Shown piece by piece: positions 6,643 to 37,621 of a stretch of 48,630 nucleotides of DNA (positions are counted from its first letter, which is position 1; every line of letters begins with the position of its first letter). Location: NCBI GenBank assembly GCA_964304625.1, contig OZ199840.1, forward strand, positions 8,346,657 through 8,395,286. The letters are read 5' to 3'. Both the position numbers and the translations under genes were made by a program. A model generated the notes under the pieces. The model had not been told where the DNA came from and did no database searches. It saw nothing but the letters and a program-made list of their open reading frames with translations. The stretch is from Kudoa neothunni. Taxonomy: Eukaryota > Animalia > Cnidaria.

Positions 6643-7108
6643 TTATTTTTTTAGGAGTTCCTTCGTAATTGTGGCGTTTTGTTGAACCTATAAAAAACAT
6701 AACAAAACAACAACCAAAATTAAACCCACTAATGACAACCACTCTTCATTTCCATTTAAAAACTCTATTTGATCAATTATTTGCATTTGATTTATCTCGT
6801 CTAAAGAGGGTAAATTTTTAATTTCCTCCAAACTACATAATTCATCAACGTAACAGTCGGTTTTCCTAATAATCCAATGTTGAAAATATATTAATTTGTT
6901 TGTTGGACTACTTGAAGTATTTATTGCATTTATCAACGTCAATTTTGATTTTGGATAGAATTTCATTTGACGTAATTTTCGATCTGCCCACACCACTTAA
7001 ATCCTCCAAACGGTCACAAATCGTATTCTGCATTAACTCGTGGAGATCTTTCATAGAATCCGATATTGTGTCCAATAATTGTTCGACTCTGTCATTATTT
7101 AGGGCCAT
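6643..7108 (-). CDS. Small helical protein, probably Mediator subunit MED21 (Srb7)-like
   Basis: Three exons (introns about 6866-6911 and 6688-6729) give MALNNDRVEQLLDTI...KKTDCYVDELCSLEE...GNEEWLSLVQQNATITKELLKK*. From memory this resembles MED21 (MADRLTQLQDAV...KDIDVLIDSLPSEE...[22 protein letters not shown]), with matching spacing at the C-terminus. Needs an HMM search. Confidence 0.45.
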
Positions 7109-7653
7109 TGGAATGAGGTGGTAATAATCTTCGTTACGACTCGAGGAAAATCGGTGTTTATAAAAAGTTGAGTTTTGGGGATGCTAAGTAATTTTTTAAT
7201 TATCTTTTAACTCAAAATATTGTCTAATTATTTTTTTATATATTATACGAAACTTAATTAGCTTAATAAATATGAAATTTATTTAAATGCATAATAGAAA
7301 GTTCTCATTTTCATTGTAGGCTTTTCAAATTTAAAACAATTTTTAATCTAAACAGTTTAGTACAAATTCTTATTAAGATATTACGTACAAATTCGAATAT
7401 AATTATGAAAGGTAATATAAGGAAGAAAATACATGTAAATGATGGGGCTTAAATTCAGACAGAAAATAAATTTAAAAACTCATCGTGGTTTCTTTTTTAA
7501 GGATATTGGTTATTTCGAAGAAGATATTAATGTTGTCACCGCCTAATCACAGTATAAATATGTTACATTAAAAGATAACAAAGTCATAATTTTTCATGAA
7601 ATAGATTATGCATGATTTTTTACGTTGACGTTGAATACGCTTAATACAAACTA

Positions 7654-8192
7654 CAGTAATGGATAGTACGTATTTATTACGGAAACGCACAAAAATATTA
7701 AAACAATAAATTAGCTATAACCTAGATATTACAGAAAAAAGAAGTTACTTTTTTGTTTAAAAATACGGGTTAAAATTGAGTAATCATCTGAAATAGAATC
7801 AGATATTAACTACCATTTCTTTGAGCCATGATATTTAAAATAATTGCGAAGTTCTTCTAAATAAAATAAGACCGCGTCTGAAACGTTCAATTTATTATCA
7901 ATACCATCATCTTGCGTTTCTAAATTTTTTGAACGATGCTACTATTGCGTTATTGTTACTACTATGAATTAGGGAGGACATCATTATAAACCACCTTACT
8001 ATATATTAACAACGCGTGGCTATGTATATCCTCCATTTTTTAACTAGGTGCCACATTTGTATAACTATAAAAATTTATTAATCGTTCAATTCGTGTAATC
8101 CTAATATTATATGATTTTTAAAATCATTTAAAATATGAGAGACCCTTTTAATATGTAAAATTACCAATGTACGTACGACTGGTTCATTAATG
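7654..8192 (-). mobile_element. pogo/Tigger-type non-autonomous element, family A copy 1
   Basis: TA-flanked degenerate TIRs (ta|cagtaatggatagtacg ... cgtacgactggttcattaatg|ta). The interior is homologous, in inverted orientation, to 47194-47838. It contains a pogo C-terminal-like remnant, AIVASFKK...DDGIDN. Confidence 0.7.
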
Positions 8193-31168: not shown

Positions 31169-32926
31169 TTAGAGAGTATTCCATACCACTTGATATCCAT
31201 ATTGATTATATAAGGCCAATTTGAATTTTTCAGATTGTTCAGCTGTTTGAAACTCCAGACACATGCTCACCTAACAACAATTAAATGTGATAATGAATAG
31301 TTGGGAGTGTTAATACTTTGCAGAGATAGACACTAGCCTGTACAGAAACTCTTTCGGTGGAAATATCTCTGATGCTAATATAAATATAAATCTTTATTGA
31401 ATCAGCATTAAAAATGAATACTTTATCTGATGATCATTTAGCATTTGGATGATCTTCTGGAGTCCACCGGGACGATCGTTTGTTAACAACGTAATTTTGG
31501 CAAGTCTTCCACTAGAAAACAAGGCTCGGTCGATAACATAAGTCAATGTGAGTGAATCTATATTTGATCCACCTAACATGAATGCCACTCTGAATAAATA
31601 ATTTATAAGATTTGATATGTTTTGAAAACTTTTTATTTTGAAGATGATTGAGTTTGCCAGATACCAATGCCGCTACCCCAGCTGCCCCCGCTCCTTCAAT
31701 GACACAGCGTTCATACTCCATCAGCTTGTAAATAGCTTTGAAAATATCACGTTCACTTAAAATGCCAAAAGTTAAAATATGTCTTAAAATTAATTTAATT
31801 AAAATGCTTTTACTCTACTTGAATCATCTGATCGTATAATGGAAGTAGAATGTTTAGCGGGTTTGCACCTACAGTTTTTACACTCAAACCTATTGCAATA
31901 GATTGAGAGAAACACTGGTAGTATTTATTTTTACCATCCGCTACAGTCAAACTTAAATCTGTCTGCAATGTGACTAGCTGTTTGGCAGCTAATGCCTTAT
32001 TCATAGAGTCACAGATACTAGTCTCCACTCCCTTTGATGATACCAAGTAAATTTCAAACACATATATTGTACTAGTGAATTTACTATAATTTTGCAGTTG
32101 GGGAATAGTTTCTTAGTTGCTGTTGCAACACCCGAAATAAGGCCTCCACCTCCAACGGGAACGATCATTGCATCCAAATGATGAGTTTGTTGGGCTATTT
32201 CCAACATGACGGTTCCGTGCCCAGCAATAATCGAAGGATCATTAATACTTACAAAAAAATATATTTAACTCTATCATCACTTATTAAGTTACCCATTAGC
32301 ATATTTTAGGTTGTTTTGTTCGGCGTACGTGATAGCAGTAGCTTTAGCTTCATCAAAGCTTTTCCCCGTAACTATAACTTTGGCTCCGAGTTTTTGGCAT
32401 TTTTCCACTTTTAATCGCGGAGACGTTTCGGGGATAAACACAGTTATGGGTATTGAAAGTTTTCTTCCATGATAGCTTAATCCTAAAGCATGGCTTCCTG
32501 ATGATGCAGCCACAACACCTCTTTCACATTGCTCCTACCAAGTTATTGTGTGAGGACTGAAATGCGTCTGAAATAGATAGAAAGTACTTTAGTGAGCGAT
32601 AATAGAAAATTTAATGCACCCCTTTCTTTGAATCTAAACAAAATCATTTTGGAAAAAATATTTTAAGGACAATATTCACCCTCCTGTGCATTGGCGATAG
32701 TCATGTTTTAATAGCACTTCCATGTTATATTCTTCTGATAACTTTTCAGAAACCTAAAAATTACTAAAAGAAAATTGTATTTTTAAGTATTAAATTATAT
32801 AATTCAGATGAGTTCATCGTTGCTGTAATAAATGATAAAATTTACCGAAAATTCTGTGAATTTGATTCCAGATTTTATTCTCATATAAGCATCTTCGATA
32901 TCTTTGAATGGCACTATTTCTTCCAT
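31169..32926 (-). CDS. PLP-dependent threonine/serine dehydratase-family protein with ACT domain, paralog 1 (racemase-type active site)
   Basis: Eleven exons splice without stops: MEEIVPF...TGGFKERGA...AASSGSHA...AGHGT...VPVGGGGLISG...GVE...ADGL...EGAGAAG...LGGSNID...DRPGGL (ACT)...VVWNTL*. Confidence 0.92.
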
Positions 32927-34485
32927 ATCGATTGGGATTATAATATTTTAACGAATCCTCAACGATATCTTGTAAATCTTAAAGTATTATGGTAATTAAC
33001 CGGTTCAATTAATTAATATATTTAACAACAATCAAGCCACATTGAACATGTCTCAGCATGGATGGAAAATTAAAAAATAATCCGTAAACTTATTTATATT
33101 TGTTGTTAAAGTCAAGCGGTATATTTATAGATGTGTAAACAAATTATCTCGAATAACTAATGATGATAAAAATTAAATTATAGAATTGTAGACTGAAACG
33201 ATTTAATTTTGTAATTATAAATATAAAACCTGATTATTATTTGAATGTAATATTTTTTAACATGCTTTTTATAACTAAAATTATTTCCTATGATAAATGC
33301 AACTTGATGCACTTATGTGTTCTTTAATTACTTTGACACAAATCTATTTACATATACAAAAATGGATTAAACGGGATATACCAGGTGATCTAAGAATTCT
33401 TCATAATCAGTCATAAATGTTTTTTGATATTCTTTAAATTTATATAACAAAAAATTAATGTCGGGAAGTATTATGATGTCTCGCTTATTATACAAAATGC
33501 CTCAAAATATCAATATCAATAACAGCTGAGCCAGAATTAAATAATTTAAGTGATCACGTGATTTTAAAATTTAATTCTTAAAATTTGGAGCTTCTATCTA
33601 ACTCTCCAATATTTTTACTTTTAACTTACGAGTAAAATGCGGTTATTATACTCAAGACAAGTTTAAGTAGCAATTTTCTATTTCCAATCGAATGATAAAA
33701 TTGTTAATATCGCATTTTATTTCACATTTCTTTTTATCGTATCTCTAAATAATGTATCAATGTAACTTTTTTTTATTCCTACAAAAATAATTTAATGTGA
33801 AGCATTCTATAAGAAACATTTTGCTATTAATGAACTCAAACTTTTAAAATTTGTTAAAATCAATATAGACAATTTTGATACTCTCATCAATTAACGAGTG
33901 TTAATCGAAAACATTAAAAAATGACTACAATCAATAATTGGATCAAAATATTTATAAATGGACTGGGTTCATCATGCAGGAACCTAAAAATATCACTTTC
34001 TTCTTGCGATATCATTTGACAAAATAATTAAATATAAATGTCAGATACTACGAGAAAATAGATCTGCGATTCTCGGATAAAACTAGACTCACACTCCCCT
34101 TAACATACGATAAGGTATGGTTGACTCAAATTTTCTCAAAAATTACTTTCTTTGGTGAGCGAATCTCGCACCCTCCAAGCCCAAAGTTCGCATCCCGTTG
34201 TTGAGGGAACCACTGAAATAGACTACGTTACTTCGCCAATGATTGTTTGTGTAGATTCTCAAAAGATACAATACAAAACGGTTAAATTTTTAAGTTTGAG
34301 CTGCTTAAGTCACACCTGACGACGTTGGAATCATAAGTTACAAAAATAACAACTAACTTAGAAAATATTGACGATTCAGTATCACTATTCTTTATAAATA
34401 ACAACGAAATAAACATCGAGGTCCACATTATGATACAGAAAGAGAAAAAGATTTCATTTAATGTCTGGAAATCTATAACTTGATA

Positions 34486-34992
34486 CAGTGCAACCTCGAA
34501 ATTCGACCAAAAATATTGAATCAGTAAGACTTTTGAGTTCGAACACATAGATAATAGATAGGGTATTCAGAACAAATCCAGTTGGAGCTAAAACCAGAGA
34601 AGAAAAGATTTTCAAGAAGGAGATTAGCTTAATCAAATTGTGCGTAAGTCATCGAAAGAAGAACCTTTATTATGTATCGTACGACGAACAAAAAATATTT
34701 ATCCTATGTAACATGTGGATTATAAGGATTGTAATCCACCAATCATATACGCAATCGAGAACAGAGCGGGACGGCACCACAGACTTTAATGCTAATAACG
34801 TAGGTTCGAATCCCGATTCGGAGCTTGTGTTACATCGTATATCTCATTTTTAATAAATAAGAATAAAAATAGTCATTTATTTGATGAGCAGTACGGATTA
34901 AACTAATTTTCATTATATTAAATGGGAAAAATTGGTTCGGAGTTCGAACACACTTCTAGAACGGATTATGGTCGAAGTCCTAGGTTACATTG
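34486..34992. mobile_element. Tigger/pogo-type MITE
   Basis: TA-flanked TIRs ta|cagtgcaacctcgaaattcgacc and the reverse complement ta|caatgtaacctaggacttcgacc (20/25 match including TA). Internal gagttcgaacac repeats. Confidence 0.65.
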
Positions 34993-35774
34993 TAGATTCC
35001 AGTTCAACTGAAACGCATTATCTTTCTGAAGGTTAATAAATAGATATTTTTAGGTAAAAACGATTTATTGAAAGATAGTCTTATTTTATTTAGTAGGATA
35101 TAGCAAAATATTGAACATCAAGACTCTAACAATTGGTAACTTAAGCCTGACTCTTTTTCCTTAGTTTATGAAATTCTTAAACGTAATTTAATATAATTTT
35201 TTTACTAATAATTTTTCACTGATAGTTAATTTCGCATTTTTTACTCTGTGCGCAGACGCGGTTCTATTATGTTGACCACGCTTGCGCAGAAAAATTTTTA
35301 AACTTAAGATATGATGCCATATTGGTGAGCAAATCGTTCATTCCAAATTTGTATAGAATTTAATATCTAGGAGGCGATATGTGACTTCACTTTTGGATGC
35401 ATACAAAGAATATCCACATTTTGTGCAAGCCATATCATACCACAGGAATTTCTGTATTAATGCCGCCCTATTTTATTCCCTCTTTTGGGTTGTTACGAGT
35501 ATTTAAATGTAAAGTTTCGTCTTTTAACATTTTTTAGGGCCATACAAATCAGGTTAACCAATTTTAGTTGTTATTTTTAAACTTTTTCTAGAACTGGAAA
35601 TGATTGACGATCTTTATGTTAAGGTTGATCGACAAGAATTTCGCAAACTATAATCTAGTCGATAAAATTCTATTTTATTTCCACATTTTACTAAAATATA
35701 TATTTTGCGTTTGATTTCCACATAATTCCTTTTTTATAAATAAACTATAATATTCAACTAAGAATCAAAACAAC

Positions 35775-37621
35775 TTAAAGATATATTTTAGTAGGTTGTC
35801 CATATAATTTAAGATTCTGAGTATTTAAGTTTGAGGGGGTTCCATTCCACCTTAGATCCATAATGGTCGCATAAGACTAGTTTGAATTCGTTGGATTGTT
35901 TGGACGTTTGAAATTCCAATAACATGTTGACCTGTTAGTGCATCCATCAGTTCGACAACAAAATTAGTCAATATATAAATGAGTATCTTTACTTTGCAAA
36001 GATAGACACTAGCTTGTATAGAAACTCTCTCGGTGGAAATATCTCTGATACTAATACAATGAATGTAAATCTGTATTGAATAAACAACGGAAAGGGATAC
36101 TTTATTCGGTGATCATCTAACATCTTAATAATCTGTTGAAGACCACCTGGGCGATCATTTATAAGCAACGATATTTTGGCCAGTCTTCCGTCAGAAAACA
36201 GAGCTCGTTCGATAACGTAATTTAATGTGAGTGAATCTATATTTGAGCCACACAGTATGAATGCCACTCTATATTAATTATTAATTAATTAATTAAATTA
36301 ACGTGAATAACTTTTTGTTTTGAAGATGATTGAGTTGACCAGATATCAAGGCCGCTATCCCGGTTGCTCCAGCCCCTTCAATGACGCATCTTTCATACTC
36401 AATTAGCTTGGAAACGGCTCTGAAAATGTCAGTTTCTCTTAAAAAAAACATCAAGATCCATTCTTAAAACTTTATCTAAAATAACATAATTACTCTACTT
36501 GGATCATTTGGTCGTATAATGGAAGAAGAATGTTTAGAGGATTCTCTCCTACGGTCTTCACGGCCAAACCTACCGTAACCGTAATACATGAAGAGAAATA
36601 AATCAATAATATTTATAGTTTTACCATCCGCGACACTCAAACTGGAATCTGTCTCCAAAGTTACCGGATGTCCTGCTTCTAATGCCTTACTCATTGAATC
36701 ACATAAGGTAGGTTCAACACCCTTTGAAGTCAAGTAAAAACTATTATTCAAAATTAAATATAATTAGAGTACAATAATTTGGCAGTTGGGGAATAATTTC
36801 TTAGTTGCTTTGGCAATTCCCGCAATAAGTCCTCCACCCCCTACTGGTAGAACCACCGCATCCAGATGATGAATTTTTTTAGCAATCTCACACATGATAG
36901 TTCCTTGTCCAGCAATAATTAAAGGATCATTAAAACTATCGAGGAATGTTATAGTTTCGGATGAACAAAACGACAATTCACTTTACCCGTTAACATATGT
37001 TAGATTGTTTTGTTCGGCGTAGTCGAGGGCGAAACTTTTGGCTTCGTCAAAACTCTTCCCTGAAATTATAACATTTGCTCCAAGTTTTTTGCATTTTTCA
37101 ATCTTGACAACTGGGGCAGTTTCTGGAATACATACTGTCACAGGTATTGAAAGCTTTTTCCCGTGATAACTCAAACCTAGAGCGTGATTTCCTGCCGACG
37201 CGGCAACAACACCCGTTTCACGTTGTTCCTATATAAAATGGCGACGTGTTAAATTCAATGTGAGATGTGTCTAATAATCATCAACTTTGCTGAGCATCAG
37301 TAGAAAGTTTAATGCTCCTCTTTCTTTGTAACTATCAACATTTAATAGTTATCTTTGGTTGAAATTTTTACCTGCCAGTACATTGACGATAGTCATGCTT
37401 AAGTAGTACGTCCATTTGAAATTCCTCCGAAAATTTTTCGGATTTCTAAATGTAAACTAACAGGAAATTAGATTATTTCATTTAAAAATACATATACGTT
37501 AGTTTGAATTTGTTCTCTAATTCCTCTGTATTAAAGTTACCGAAAATTCCGTTCGTTTTATGTGGGATTTTGTCCTCAAGTAGGCATCCTCAATGTCTTC
37601 ATAAGAAACTACCTCCTTCAT
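35775..37621 (-). CDS. Threonine/serine dehydratase (TdcB-like, ACT domain), paralog 2 with canonical active site
   Basis: Eleven exons with intron positions identical to paralog 1: MKEVVSY...TGSYKERGA...AASAGNHA...AGQGT...LPVGGGGLIAG...GVEP...ADGLAV...EGAGATG...LCGSNID...DRPGGL...KIYL*. Confidence 0.93.

Follow-up and report, generated by a model that had tools for sequence, protein, structure and literature searches.

A diverged paralogue of an ACT-type threonine ammonia-lyase in Kudoa neothunni with serine at the racemase re-face position

Racemases and dehydratases of PLP fold type II

The serine/aspartate racemases, represented by the human (3L6B) and S. pombe (1V71) enzymes, are PLP enzymes of fold type II with a size of about 320-350 aa and no ACT domain, in which a Lys is the si-face base and a Ser (Ser84 in human, Ser82 in S. 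pombe) occupies the re-face. Replacement of this Ser by Ala abolishes racemisation by the human, S. pombe and Dictyostelium enzymes, while its replacement by Thr retains about 10% of the racemisation (PMC6424897). The pyridine nitrogen of PLP is contacted by Ser313 in human serine racemase and by Cys303 in human serine dehydratase, and both beta-eliminases and racemases depend less on this nitrogen than transaminases do (PMC6424897). Fold and family are no predictors of racemisation, because pure dehydratases are found among the serine racemase homologues of bacteria (PMC11850409).

The metazoan single-ACT threonine ammonia-lyases are composed of a PALP domain and one C-terminal ACT-like domain, and share the motif set, and probably this architecture, with the gene pair described herein. 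In the distant family of diaminopropionate ammonia-lyase, the residue before Gly-Asn-His is the second catalytic base, which serves the D-isomer, and is Asp, not Ser; because this second base sits there, the re-face position would be the one that controls stereochemistry. Wang and colleagues are said to have found in 2012 that the change of Ala to Ser alone confers racemase activity on serine dehydratase. PMC6504911 takes Drosophila CG8129 (469 aa), which behaves genetically like a racemase, to be the serine racemase of the fly. A TdcB-like protein of tephritid flies (P0145, 469 aa) belongs to the ACT-type family of the pair, with Thr at the re-face position and a long branch, and CG8129 appears, from its length and the taxon of P0145, to belong to this family as well. 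With the orthology of CG8129 and P0145 judged from length and taxon alone, the fly case would be a precedent for racemase function arising in the ACT-type family.

Structure, family and evolution of the gene pair

The window, a stretch of 48,630 nucleotides of the K. neothunni genome, carries on its minus strand two 11-exon genes, par1 and par2, for which models were built by hand and checked for splicing and open reading frames (Table 1). Neither gene contains an internal stop. All 20 introns are of GT-AG type and 40-95 nt in length, the positions and phases of 10 out of 10 introns match between the two genes, and exons 1-10 agree in length and phase, as expected from the original prediction of two intact paralogues with 10 identical intron positions. 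The proteins are 76% identical. As a second assembly copy of the region matches all the coding bases of par1, its odd residues are not sequencing errors. For par2, the TAA variant of the second copy would stop the protein at 410 aa, the same end point as par1. Exon-sized ORFs of other animals end with '...YING', as does exon 4 of the pair, which suggests that at least the intron position at the end of exon 4 is common to other animals.

Table 1. Positions in the window of the two genes and their main features
Feature	Position	Strand	Remarks
par1 gene (diverged copy)	31169-32926	minus	11 exons, 410 aa; intact ORF, PALP domain
par1 exons 1-6	32926-32846, 32753-32680, 32633-32588, 32534-32293, 32247-32085, 32031-31935	minus	
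par1 exons 7-11	31889-31814, 31755-31630, 31589-31422, 31374-31317, 31270-31169	minus	
par1 Gly52	32681-32680 + 32633	minus	codon split by intron; invariant Ser in family
par1 Lys54	32627-32629	minus	Schiff-base Lys, retained (alignment to family)
par1 exon 4	32293-32534	minus	carries SSGSH loop; E 4.7e-15 to tomato threonine deaminase 3iau; best NCBIfam PRK07334 and TIGR01127
par1 codon 79	32499-32501	minus	tca, Ser, re-face position; Ser84 of human serine racemase by alignment ranges
par1 codon 81	32493-32495	minus	agc, Ser, in place of PLP O3'-binding Asn (Asn86 of human serine racemase); Asn in 110/110 family members
par1 His158 in AGHGT	32217-32219	minus	Gln in 95% of family
par1 tetraglycine phosphate loop G180-G183	32142-32153	minus	retained (alignment)
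par1 Gly308	31571-31573	minus	PLP pyridine-nitrogen H-bond residue; Cys in 99% of family
par1 ACT-like regulatory domain	31214-31492 (introns included)	minus	residues 335-396, exons 9-11; aligns with Pfam ACT stretch 375-436 of P0185
par2 gene (conventional copy)	35809-37621	minus	11 exons, 417 aa as assembled in window
par2 exons 1-6	37621-37541, 37445-37372, 37331-37286, 37228-36987, 36935-36773, 36721-36625	minus	
par2 exons 7-11	36569-36494, 36437-36312, 36268-36101, 36050-35993, 35931-35809	minus	
par2 counterpart of codon 79	37193-37195	minus	gca, Ala
par2 counterpart of codon 81	37187-37189	minus	aat, Asn
par2 counterpart of Gly308	36250-36252	minus	Cys
par2 ACT-like regulatory domain	35875-36171 (introns included)	minus	residues 335-396; aligns with Pfam ACT stretch of P0185
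par2 codon 411	35830-35832	minus	AAA in window, TAA in second assembly copy (difference at 35832)

Pfam PALP (PF00291) was matched by exons 4 and 5 of both genes (E 1e-14 to 1e-18), and maps by alignment to residues 18-309. The best solved relatives at the exon level are threonine deaminases (E 1e-11 to 1e-17, the best being 1e-15 to 1e-17), whereas exon 4 matched the serine/aspartate racemase chains at E 2e-6 to 4e-4 for par1 and 2e-9 to 5e-5 for par2; these racemases form a separate clade (E 1e-4 with the par1 exon against 1e-15 for threonine deaminases), serine racemases reaching 1e-4 to 1e-7 over the two genes. The top NCBIfam models for exon 4 alone were those of threonine ammonia-lyase, PRK07334 and TIGR01127, while the models of diaminopropionate ammonia-lyase were matched at E about 1e-6 to 1e-7. 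Proteins of metazoans named 'L-threonine ammonia-lyase', which combine PALP with ACT, make up the relatives. The relative P0185 passes TIGR01127 (score 385, cut-off 379), and XP_001637194.3 of Nematostella vectensis (single-ACT L-threonine ammonia-lyase, TIGR01127/PRK07334) is an example of the family, with full-length identity of 47-50% to the pair. By these similarities, par1 and par2 are assigned to the metazoan single-ACT L-threonine ammonia-lyase family (PLP fold type II, ilvA_1Cterm type), outside the serine racemase clade. Unlike the racemases, both carry a C-terminal ACT-like extension; the ACT domain claimed for par1 is putative, being recognized by its alignment with ACT-bearing relatives alone, exon 9 by itself giving no Pfam match and the domain being split over three exons.

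In a tree for which three environmental sequences served as outgroup, support of 100% was obtained both for par1 and par2 as a sister pair and for the 42-row group that includes them along with the animal, choanoflagellate and algal family members; the pair is on a long stem branch (1.55), and its placement within Cnidaria was not resolved by the tree. The proposed independence of par1 from the classical Ser/Asp racemase clade would not be unprecedented given CG8129.

Between par1 and par2, dN is 0.146 and dS 1.24, and the dN/dS of about 0.12 is even along the gene (bootstrap range of pN/pS, 0.18-0.27). With dS at about 1.2, the duplication is an old one; it took place within this lineage, and both copies are under purifying selection. 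The ratio is not near 1, and together with the intact ORF it marks par1 as an ACT-type dehydratase paralogue that selection has maintained. The rate of evolution of par1 is about 2-3 times that of par2: the branch lengths are 0.37 and 0.11, respectively (3.4-fold), and the rarer residue is in par1 at 42 sites and in par2 at 18 (p = 0.003), although the difference was not significant by the strict relative-rate count (19 against 13, p = 0.29). Departures from columns conserved at 90% or more are common to both copies at 34 sites.

Residues of the cofactor pocket

All the motif strings of the original prediction are present in the translated gene models: GFKERG, SSGSH, AGHGT, GGGG and GGSNID for par1, and SYKERG, SAGNH, AGQGT, GGGG and CGSNID for par2. 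The Schiff-base Lys motif and the tetraglycine loop are thus found in both, while the SAGNH loop with the O3'-binding Asn is present in par2 and absent in par1. The description of the par2 motifs as canonical holds for SAGNH and AGQGT, but not throughout: the family consensus is SFKERG with Phe in 110 of 110 relatives, so that the Tyr of par2 (Phe53Tyr, its main difference from the metazoan family) is itself a departure, and both copies have GSNID where GGNID is invariant in the family.

The second Ser of the par1 SSGSH loop (exon 4 residue 12) aligns with Ser84 in the serine racemases of human (3l6b) and rat (3hmk) and with Ser82 in that of S. pombe (1v71), confirming that the change from gca to tca places Ser at the racemase position. 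Against the metazoan family, par1 has Ser instead of Ala at this re-face position, Ser instead of Asn at the O3' contact, Gly instead of Cys at the pyridine nitrogen, Gly instead of Ser before Phe-Lys, and His instead of Gln in AGQGT. In 85 columns conserved at 99% or more, the par1-only changes are exactly three, S52G, N81S and C308G, all of which touch PLP; A79S and Q158H are further changes in the pocket. Among 293 relatives, the re-face position is occupied by Ala, by Leu in insects and by Thr in flies; Ser is found in none of them at either Ser position of SSGSH, which speaks against SSG being common among dehydratases of this clade, and the Asn-to-Ser change at the O3' contact has no precedent in this set. 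Gly at the pyridine-nitrogen position and Ala ahead of Phe-Lys are each seen in relatives that are otherwise canonical. In contrast to par1, the flies retain Asn (STGNH), and their pyridine-nitrogen position is occupied by Thr. More distant relatives have Ala or Cys at the position of His158.

With the Ser/Asp racemases, par1 shares the si-face Lys, the re-face Ser, the tetraglycine loop and the equivalent of human Lys114 (Lys109), and Phe53 just before Lys54 is also retained. The racemases, however, keep Asn86 and Ser313, for which par1 has Ser81 and Gly308, and Arg135 of human serine racemase is Ala in par1 by hand alignment.

Possible activities of the diverged copy

Judged from these residues, we tentatively favour, with somewhat less than even confidence, that par1 still works as a PLP enzyme, chiefly as a lyase acting by beta-elimination, and has shifted in its specificity for substrate or reaction. 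par2 would be a working dehydratase that converts Thr or Ser from the host to ammonia and 2-oxobutyrate or pyruvate, while par1, derived from the old duplication, would have stayed intact under purifying selection as its cofactor pocket was rebuilt through S52G, A79S, N81S, Q158H and C308G. The parts for PLP binding and for handling of the alpha-proton (Lys54, Phe53, the tetraglycine loop and Lys109) would have been kept, together with the ACT-like domain, and the hydroxyl of Ser79 on the re-face could allow handling of a D-isomer or racemisation, as a side or main activity. N81S could cripple catalysis, a point counted against this reading.

The remodelling of par1 into a racemase or new-substrate enzyme, as originally proposed, is consistent with A79S at the position of the re-face base, but this is the only one of the five pocket changes directed to the racemase state: serine racemases retain the Ser ahead of Phe-Lys (Gly in par1), Asn86 (Ser in par1), the Gln in AGQGT (His in par1) and Ser313 (Gly in par1), and the other four changes lead away from it. 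We consider it unlikely that par1 arose inside the ACT-type dehydratase family as a true racemase of amino acids, with the dual function of serine racemase, and was selected for making a D-amino acid with Lys54 and Ser79 as the two-base pair. The alignment of Ser79 with Ser84/Ser82, the requirement for this Ser in known racemases (PMC6424897), the absence of Ser there from the 293 relatives, the presence of Lys109, whose human counterpart may tune the re-face Ser, and the fly family member with Thr, for which the probable counterpart CG8129 is genetically racemase-like (PMC6504911), argue for a racemase, while the loss of the Asn86 and Ser313 equivalents argues against it. Neither D-amino-acid oxidase nor type-III D-serine dehydratase was detected in a search of the genome. 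We know of no use for D-Ser in a myxozoan, which also counts against a racemase. Because these D-amino-acid enzymes were not detected and par2 has Ala, with which action on a D-isomer is not expected, the proposal of a linked pair that makes and degrades a D/L-amino acid is without support. The broader possibility, a racemase or D-amino-acid-acting lyase derived from an ACT-regulated threonine dehydratase independently of both the Ser/Asp racemase clade and the fly case, with a pocket devoid of the O3' Asn and the pyridine-nitrogen donor, is likewise doubtful.

A pattern of changed invariant cofactor contacts with conservation elsewhere is also the signature of a pseudoenzyme, and par1 might be catalytically impaired and retained for a regulatory or structural role alongside par2, for instance as a subunit of a hetero-oligomer or a sensor of ACT-domain ligands. 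The three par1-only changes all remove PLP-contacting side chains (Ser to Gly, Asn to Ser, Cys to Gly), purifying selection acts on the remainder of the protein, its ACT-like domain included, and threonine deaminases are oligomers. Since neither the Schiff-base Lys nor the stacking Phe nor any part of the phosphate loop has been lost across dS above 1, and since two of the three positions carry Gly or Ala in otherwise canonical relatives as well, we regard this role as possible but not probable. Quite improbable is a redundant L-Ser/L-Thr dehydratase with odd residues that represent near-neutral drift in a fast-evolving parasite lineage. Myxozoan proteins are fast-evolving, as the shared departures and the stem branch indicate, the re-face position is variable in the family, and the strict relative-rate count is not significant; drift fits poorly, however, with clustering of invariant-column changes in the PLP pocket of one copy only, with the 3.4-fold branch asymmetry, and with the retention of both copies since dS above 1 in a genome of about 5,300 genes (PMC12239612).

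Fold-type II PLP enzymes are a textbook case in which a few residues set elimination against racemisation, and this locus provides a natural matched pair in one genome, a conventional par2 and a selection-maintained par1 with the racemase-type re-face Ser. Should par1 be inactive or an ordinary dehydratase, the finding would be one of routine paralogue divergence. As par1 is devoid of two near-universal cofactor contacts, the pair bears on the dispensability of the Asn and Cys/Ser contacts and on the extent to which a single Ser is able to redirect a dehydratase, as well as on the metabolism of a much-reduced parasite that still carries two copies of this enzyme.

Gene models and family of the two copies

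The diverged dehydratase copy, par1, and the conventional copy, par2, were modelled by hand and checked by script, and they proved to be the two intact paralogs with a shared intron layout that the original prediction had described. Exon lengths and phases match for exons 1-10, all 20 introns of the two genes are GT-AG and 40-95 nt long, and internal stops are absent from both (0 in each). Identity over the first 377 codons is 76% at the protein level and 77% at the DNA level, and all the motifs quoted earlier for each copy were found. The spacer between the genes (32927-35808, 2.9 kb) shows a rise in GC at 34001-35000 and several ORFs of 55-88 aa; no tRNA or Rfam family was found in the whole window, this spacer included. 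The GC content of the window is ~29%; for Kudoa neothunni, three chromosome scaffolds, 30% GC and a median intron of 49 bp have been reported (PMC12239612).

Features of the dehydratase pair and of the pocket of par1 (window coordinates)
Feature	Gene	Position	Strand	Description	Basis
Gene	par1	31169-32926	minus	11 exons, 410 aa	exons read from sequence, script-checked
Gene	par2	35809-37621	minus	11 exons, 417 aa	exons read from sequence, script-checked
Re-face codon (residue 79)	par1	32499-32501	minus	tca	
Re-face codon (residue 79)	par2	37193-37195	minus	gca	
S52G	par1			residue directly preceding Phe-Lys	
N81S	par1			Asn binding PLP O3'	
C308G	par1			donor to pyridine nitrogen	

Exons 4 and 5 of each gene match Pfam PALP. 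With exon 4 as query, the top solved structures were two threonine deaminases, 3iau (tomato) and 1tdj (IlvA of E. coli), with E values of 1e-11 to 1e-17, whereas serine and aspartate racemase structures were far weaker (1e-4 to 1e-9), and the top NCBIfam models were PRK07334 and TIGR01127, for threonine ammonia-lyase (the ilvA form that has a single regulatory domain at its C-terminus). The joined spliced proteins, assembled from window coordinates, served as input to the local alignments, the rate tests and the tree. Their full-length relatives are animal proteins with PALP and ACT domains, annotated as L-threonine ammonia-lyase or TdcB-like, many of which carry the automatic UniRef names 'serine racemase' or 'L-serine deaminase'; the best of them show 42-50% identity to par1 and par2, and residues 335-396 of both copies align to the part of one relative that Pfam assigns to ACT.

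Close relatives of the two proteins were not found in the collections searched. With par1 exon 4 as query, no match in an exhaustive search of representatives exceeded about 58% identity, and a word-index search gave no match; a profile built from exon 4 of both genes reached no more than 62%. The best exon-sized match, protein P0302, was rejected as a relative for dating the duplication, as it carries the canonical SAGNH loop and different intron positions and lies on a Logan contig of another AT-rich eukaryote. On the Logan contig L019 (SRR19201363, 31% GC), from an AT-rich eukaryote, the canonical SAGNH dehydratase gene at 6750-8030 has short introns whose positions differ in part.

Age of the duplication and the repeat in the assembly

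By the Nei-Gojobori method over 410 codons, dN between par1 and par2 is 0.146 and dS is 1.24, giving a dN/dS of about 0.12, uniform along the gene and across both domains; the bootstrap range of pN/pS is 0.18-0.27, and 67 of 130 four-fold sites differ. From this high dS together with the low ratio, the duplication is old and purifying selection has retained both copies. A pseudogene was rejected for par1 on its intact ORF, its canonical splice sites and the same ratio. In a site-heterogeneous maximum-likelihood tree the two are sisters with 100% support on a long stem, and their terminal branches measure 0.37 (par1) and 0.11 (par2). When sites were polarised by residue frequency among 110 family members, the rarer residue was held by par1 at 42 sites and by par2 at 18 (p = 0.003), but a stricter consensus count, 19 versus 13, was not significant. 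Apportioning dN between the copies by the tree ratio suggests a dN/dS of roughly 0.18 for par1 and 0.05 for par2, a coarse partition since synonymous sites cannot be polarised.

The genome search shows four dehydratase genes instead of two because window 20745-48630 (27.9 kb) is repeated at G000:C3:8395287-8423373 of the same assembly (offset +28086), right after a 200-N gap. The two stretches are 99.95% identical, with 15 differences (6 mismatches and 9 single-base indels), and the repeat most probably represents a contig overlap that was left unmerged, or else a haplotype copy. An older gene expansion was therefore rejected as the source of the four genes; the second pair, an assembly overlap or very recent copy, is unlikely to be real. 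Codon 411 of par2 (35830-35832) holds one of the 15 differences, AAA in the window against TAA in the repeat; a TAA codon would shorten par2 to 410 aa and make it end at the same position as par1, and its 7 extra residues may reflect a variant or an error. The coding sequence of par1 is the same in the window and in the repeat, so its residue changes are not read errors. Elsewhere in the assembly, G000:C2:12039536-12040069 is a single (TAAACC)n array of > 500 bp, the telomere motif given for one Kudoa neothunni chromosome end (PMC12239612), in agreement with the assignment of the genome to this species.

Pocket of par1 and the re-face position

In serine racemase the two bases are Lys56 on the si-face and Ser84 on the re-face. 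In the enzymes of human, S. pombe and Dictyostelium, the Ser84Ala change abolishes racemisation and leaves beta-elimination; a Ser84Thr enzyme still racemises at roughly one tenth, and Ser84 may be tuned by Lys114 via a bound water molecule (PMC6424897). The pyridine nitrogen is bonded by Ser313 in serine racemase and by Cys303 in human serine dehydratase, and deaza-PLP lowers kcat about 260-fold for a beta-eliminase, about 700-fold for a racemase and about 10^9-fold for a transaminase (PMC6424897).

As had been claimed, A79S of par1 sits on this re-face position: by the alignment ranges of the structure search, the second Ser of its SSGSH loop aligns to Ser84 of human and rat serine racemase and to Ser82 of S. 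pombe. Such a loop is not common in the clade, for among 293 relatives with a readable motif, 253 have Ala as the re-face residue, 29 (insects) have Leu, 5 (tephritid flies plus one environmental sequence) have Thr, 1 has Ile and none has Ser. Among the 85 columns conserved in at least 99% of the 110-member family set, par1 alone departs at three (S52G, N81S and C308G) and par2 alone at two, F7Y and F53Y, both conservative. Besides A79S, par1 also carries Q158H, at a position that is Gln in 95% of family members; its Lys54 and Phe53 are unchanged, as are its GGGG loop and its equivalent of Lys114 of human serine racemase, also a Lys. Otherwise canonical relatives provide precedents for Gly at the pyridine-nitrogen contact and for a small residue before Phe-Lys; for Ser in place of the loop Asn there is none (0/293).

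Re-face Thr occurs in the tephritid members P0145 and P0168-P0170 (Anastrepha) and Leu in 29 insect relatives, and the fly branch is very long in the tree (2.44). With Thr in tephritids and Leu in many other insects, the re-face position has shifted several times within the animal family. In the literature, Drosophila CG8129 (469 aa) is taken to be the serine racemase of the fly (PMC6504911). A tephritid TdcB-like protein of 469 aa, which belongs to the family of par1 and par2 and which we infer to be the CG8129 orthologue, has the loop STGNH.

Candidate functions of par1

The original prediction saw par1 as being remodelled into a racemase or a new-substrate enzyme. Its reasoning on A79S is sound, and Ser is truly unusual at this position in the family; Wang et al. 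in 2012 reportedly found that Ala65Ser confers racemase activity on serine dehydratase. A79S is the only one of the five pocket changes that leads towards the racemase state, however, and S52G, N81S, Q158H and C308G lead away from it, so that a true racemase appears unlikely. Pure dehydratases can also occur among bacterial serine racemase homologues (PMC11850409).

The further proposal, of a pair that makes and degrades D-amino acids, gained no support from searches of the genome (4 contigs, 40 Mb) for the DAO family and Ala_racemase_N, made exon by exon so that genes can be missed. In these exon-by-exon searches Ala_racemase_N (PF01168) had no match anywhere, no classical serine racemase was seen with PALP, and no convincing D-amino-acid oxidase was found; the sole strong DAO-family (PF01266) match, G000:C1:7557834-7558746, was rejected as such an oxidase since it resembles mitochondrial glycerol-3-phosphate dehydrogenase. 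A single PALP gene (G000:C1:5893449-5894439) was seen beyond the two dehydratases and their repeat; it has a TSGNTG motif and resembles cystathionine-beta-synthase or cysteine synthase.

Judged from its residues, the pattern of par1 would fit active-site remodelling for new chemistry and a retained pseudoenzyme that has lost catalysis about equally well. What tips the balance towards a working PLP enzyme is that Lys54, Phe53 and the phosphate loop were conserved while dS rose above 1; the pseudoenzyme is rather doubtful, if somewhat more probable than the true racemase. A redundant dehydratase seems quite improbable. We tentatively favour par1 as a lyase of altered specificity, possibly with a D-isomer or racemase side activity.
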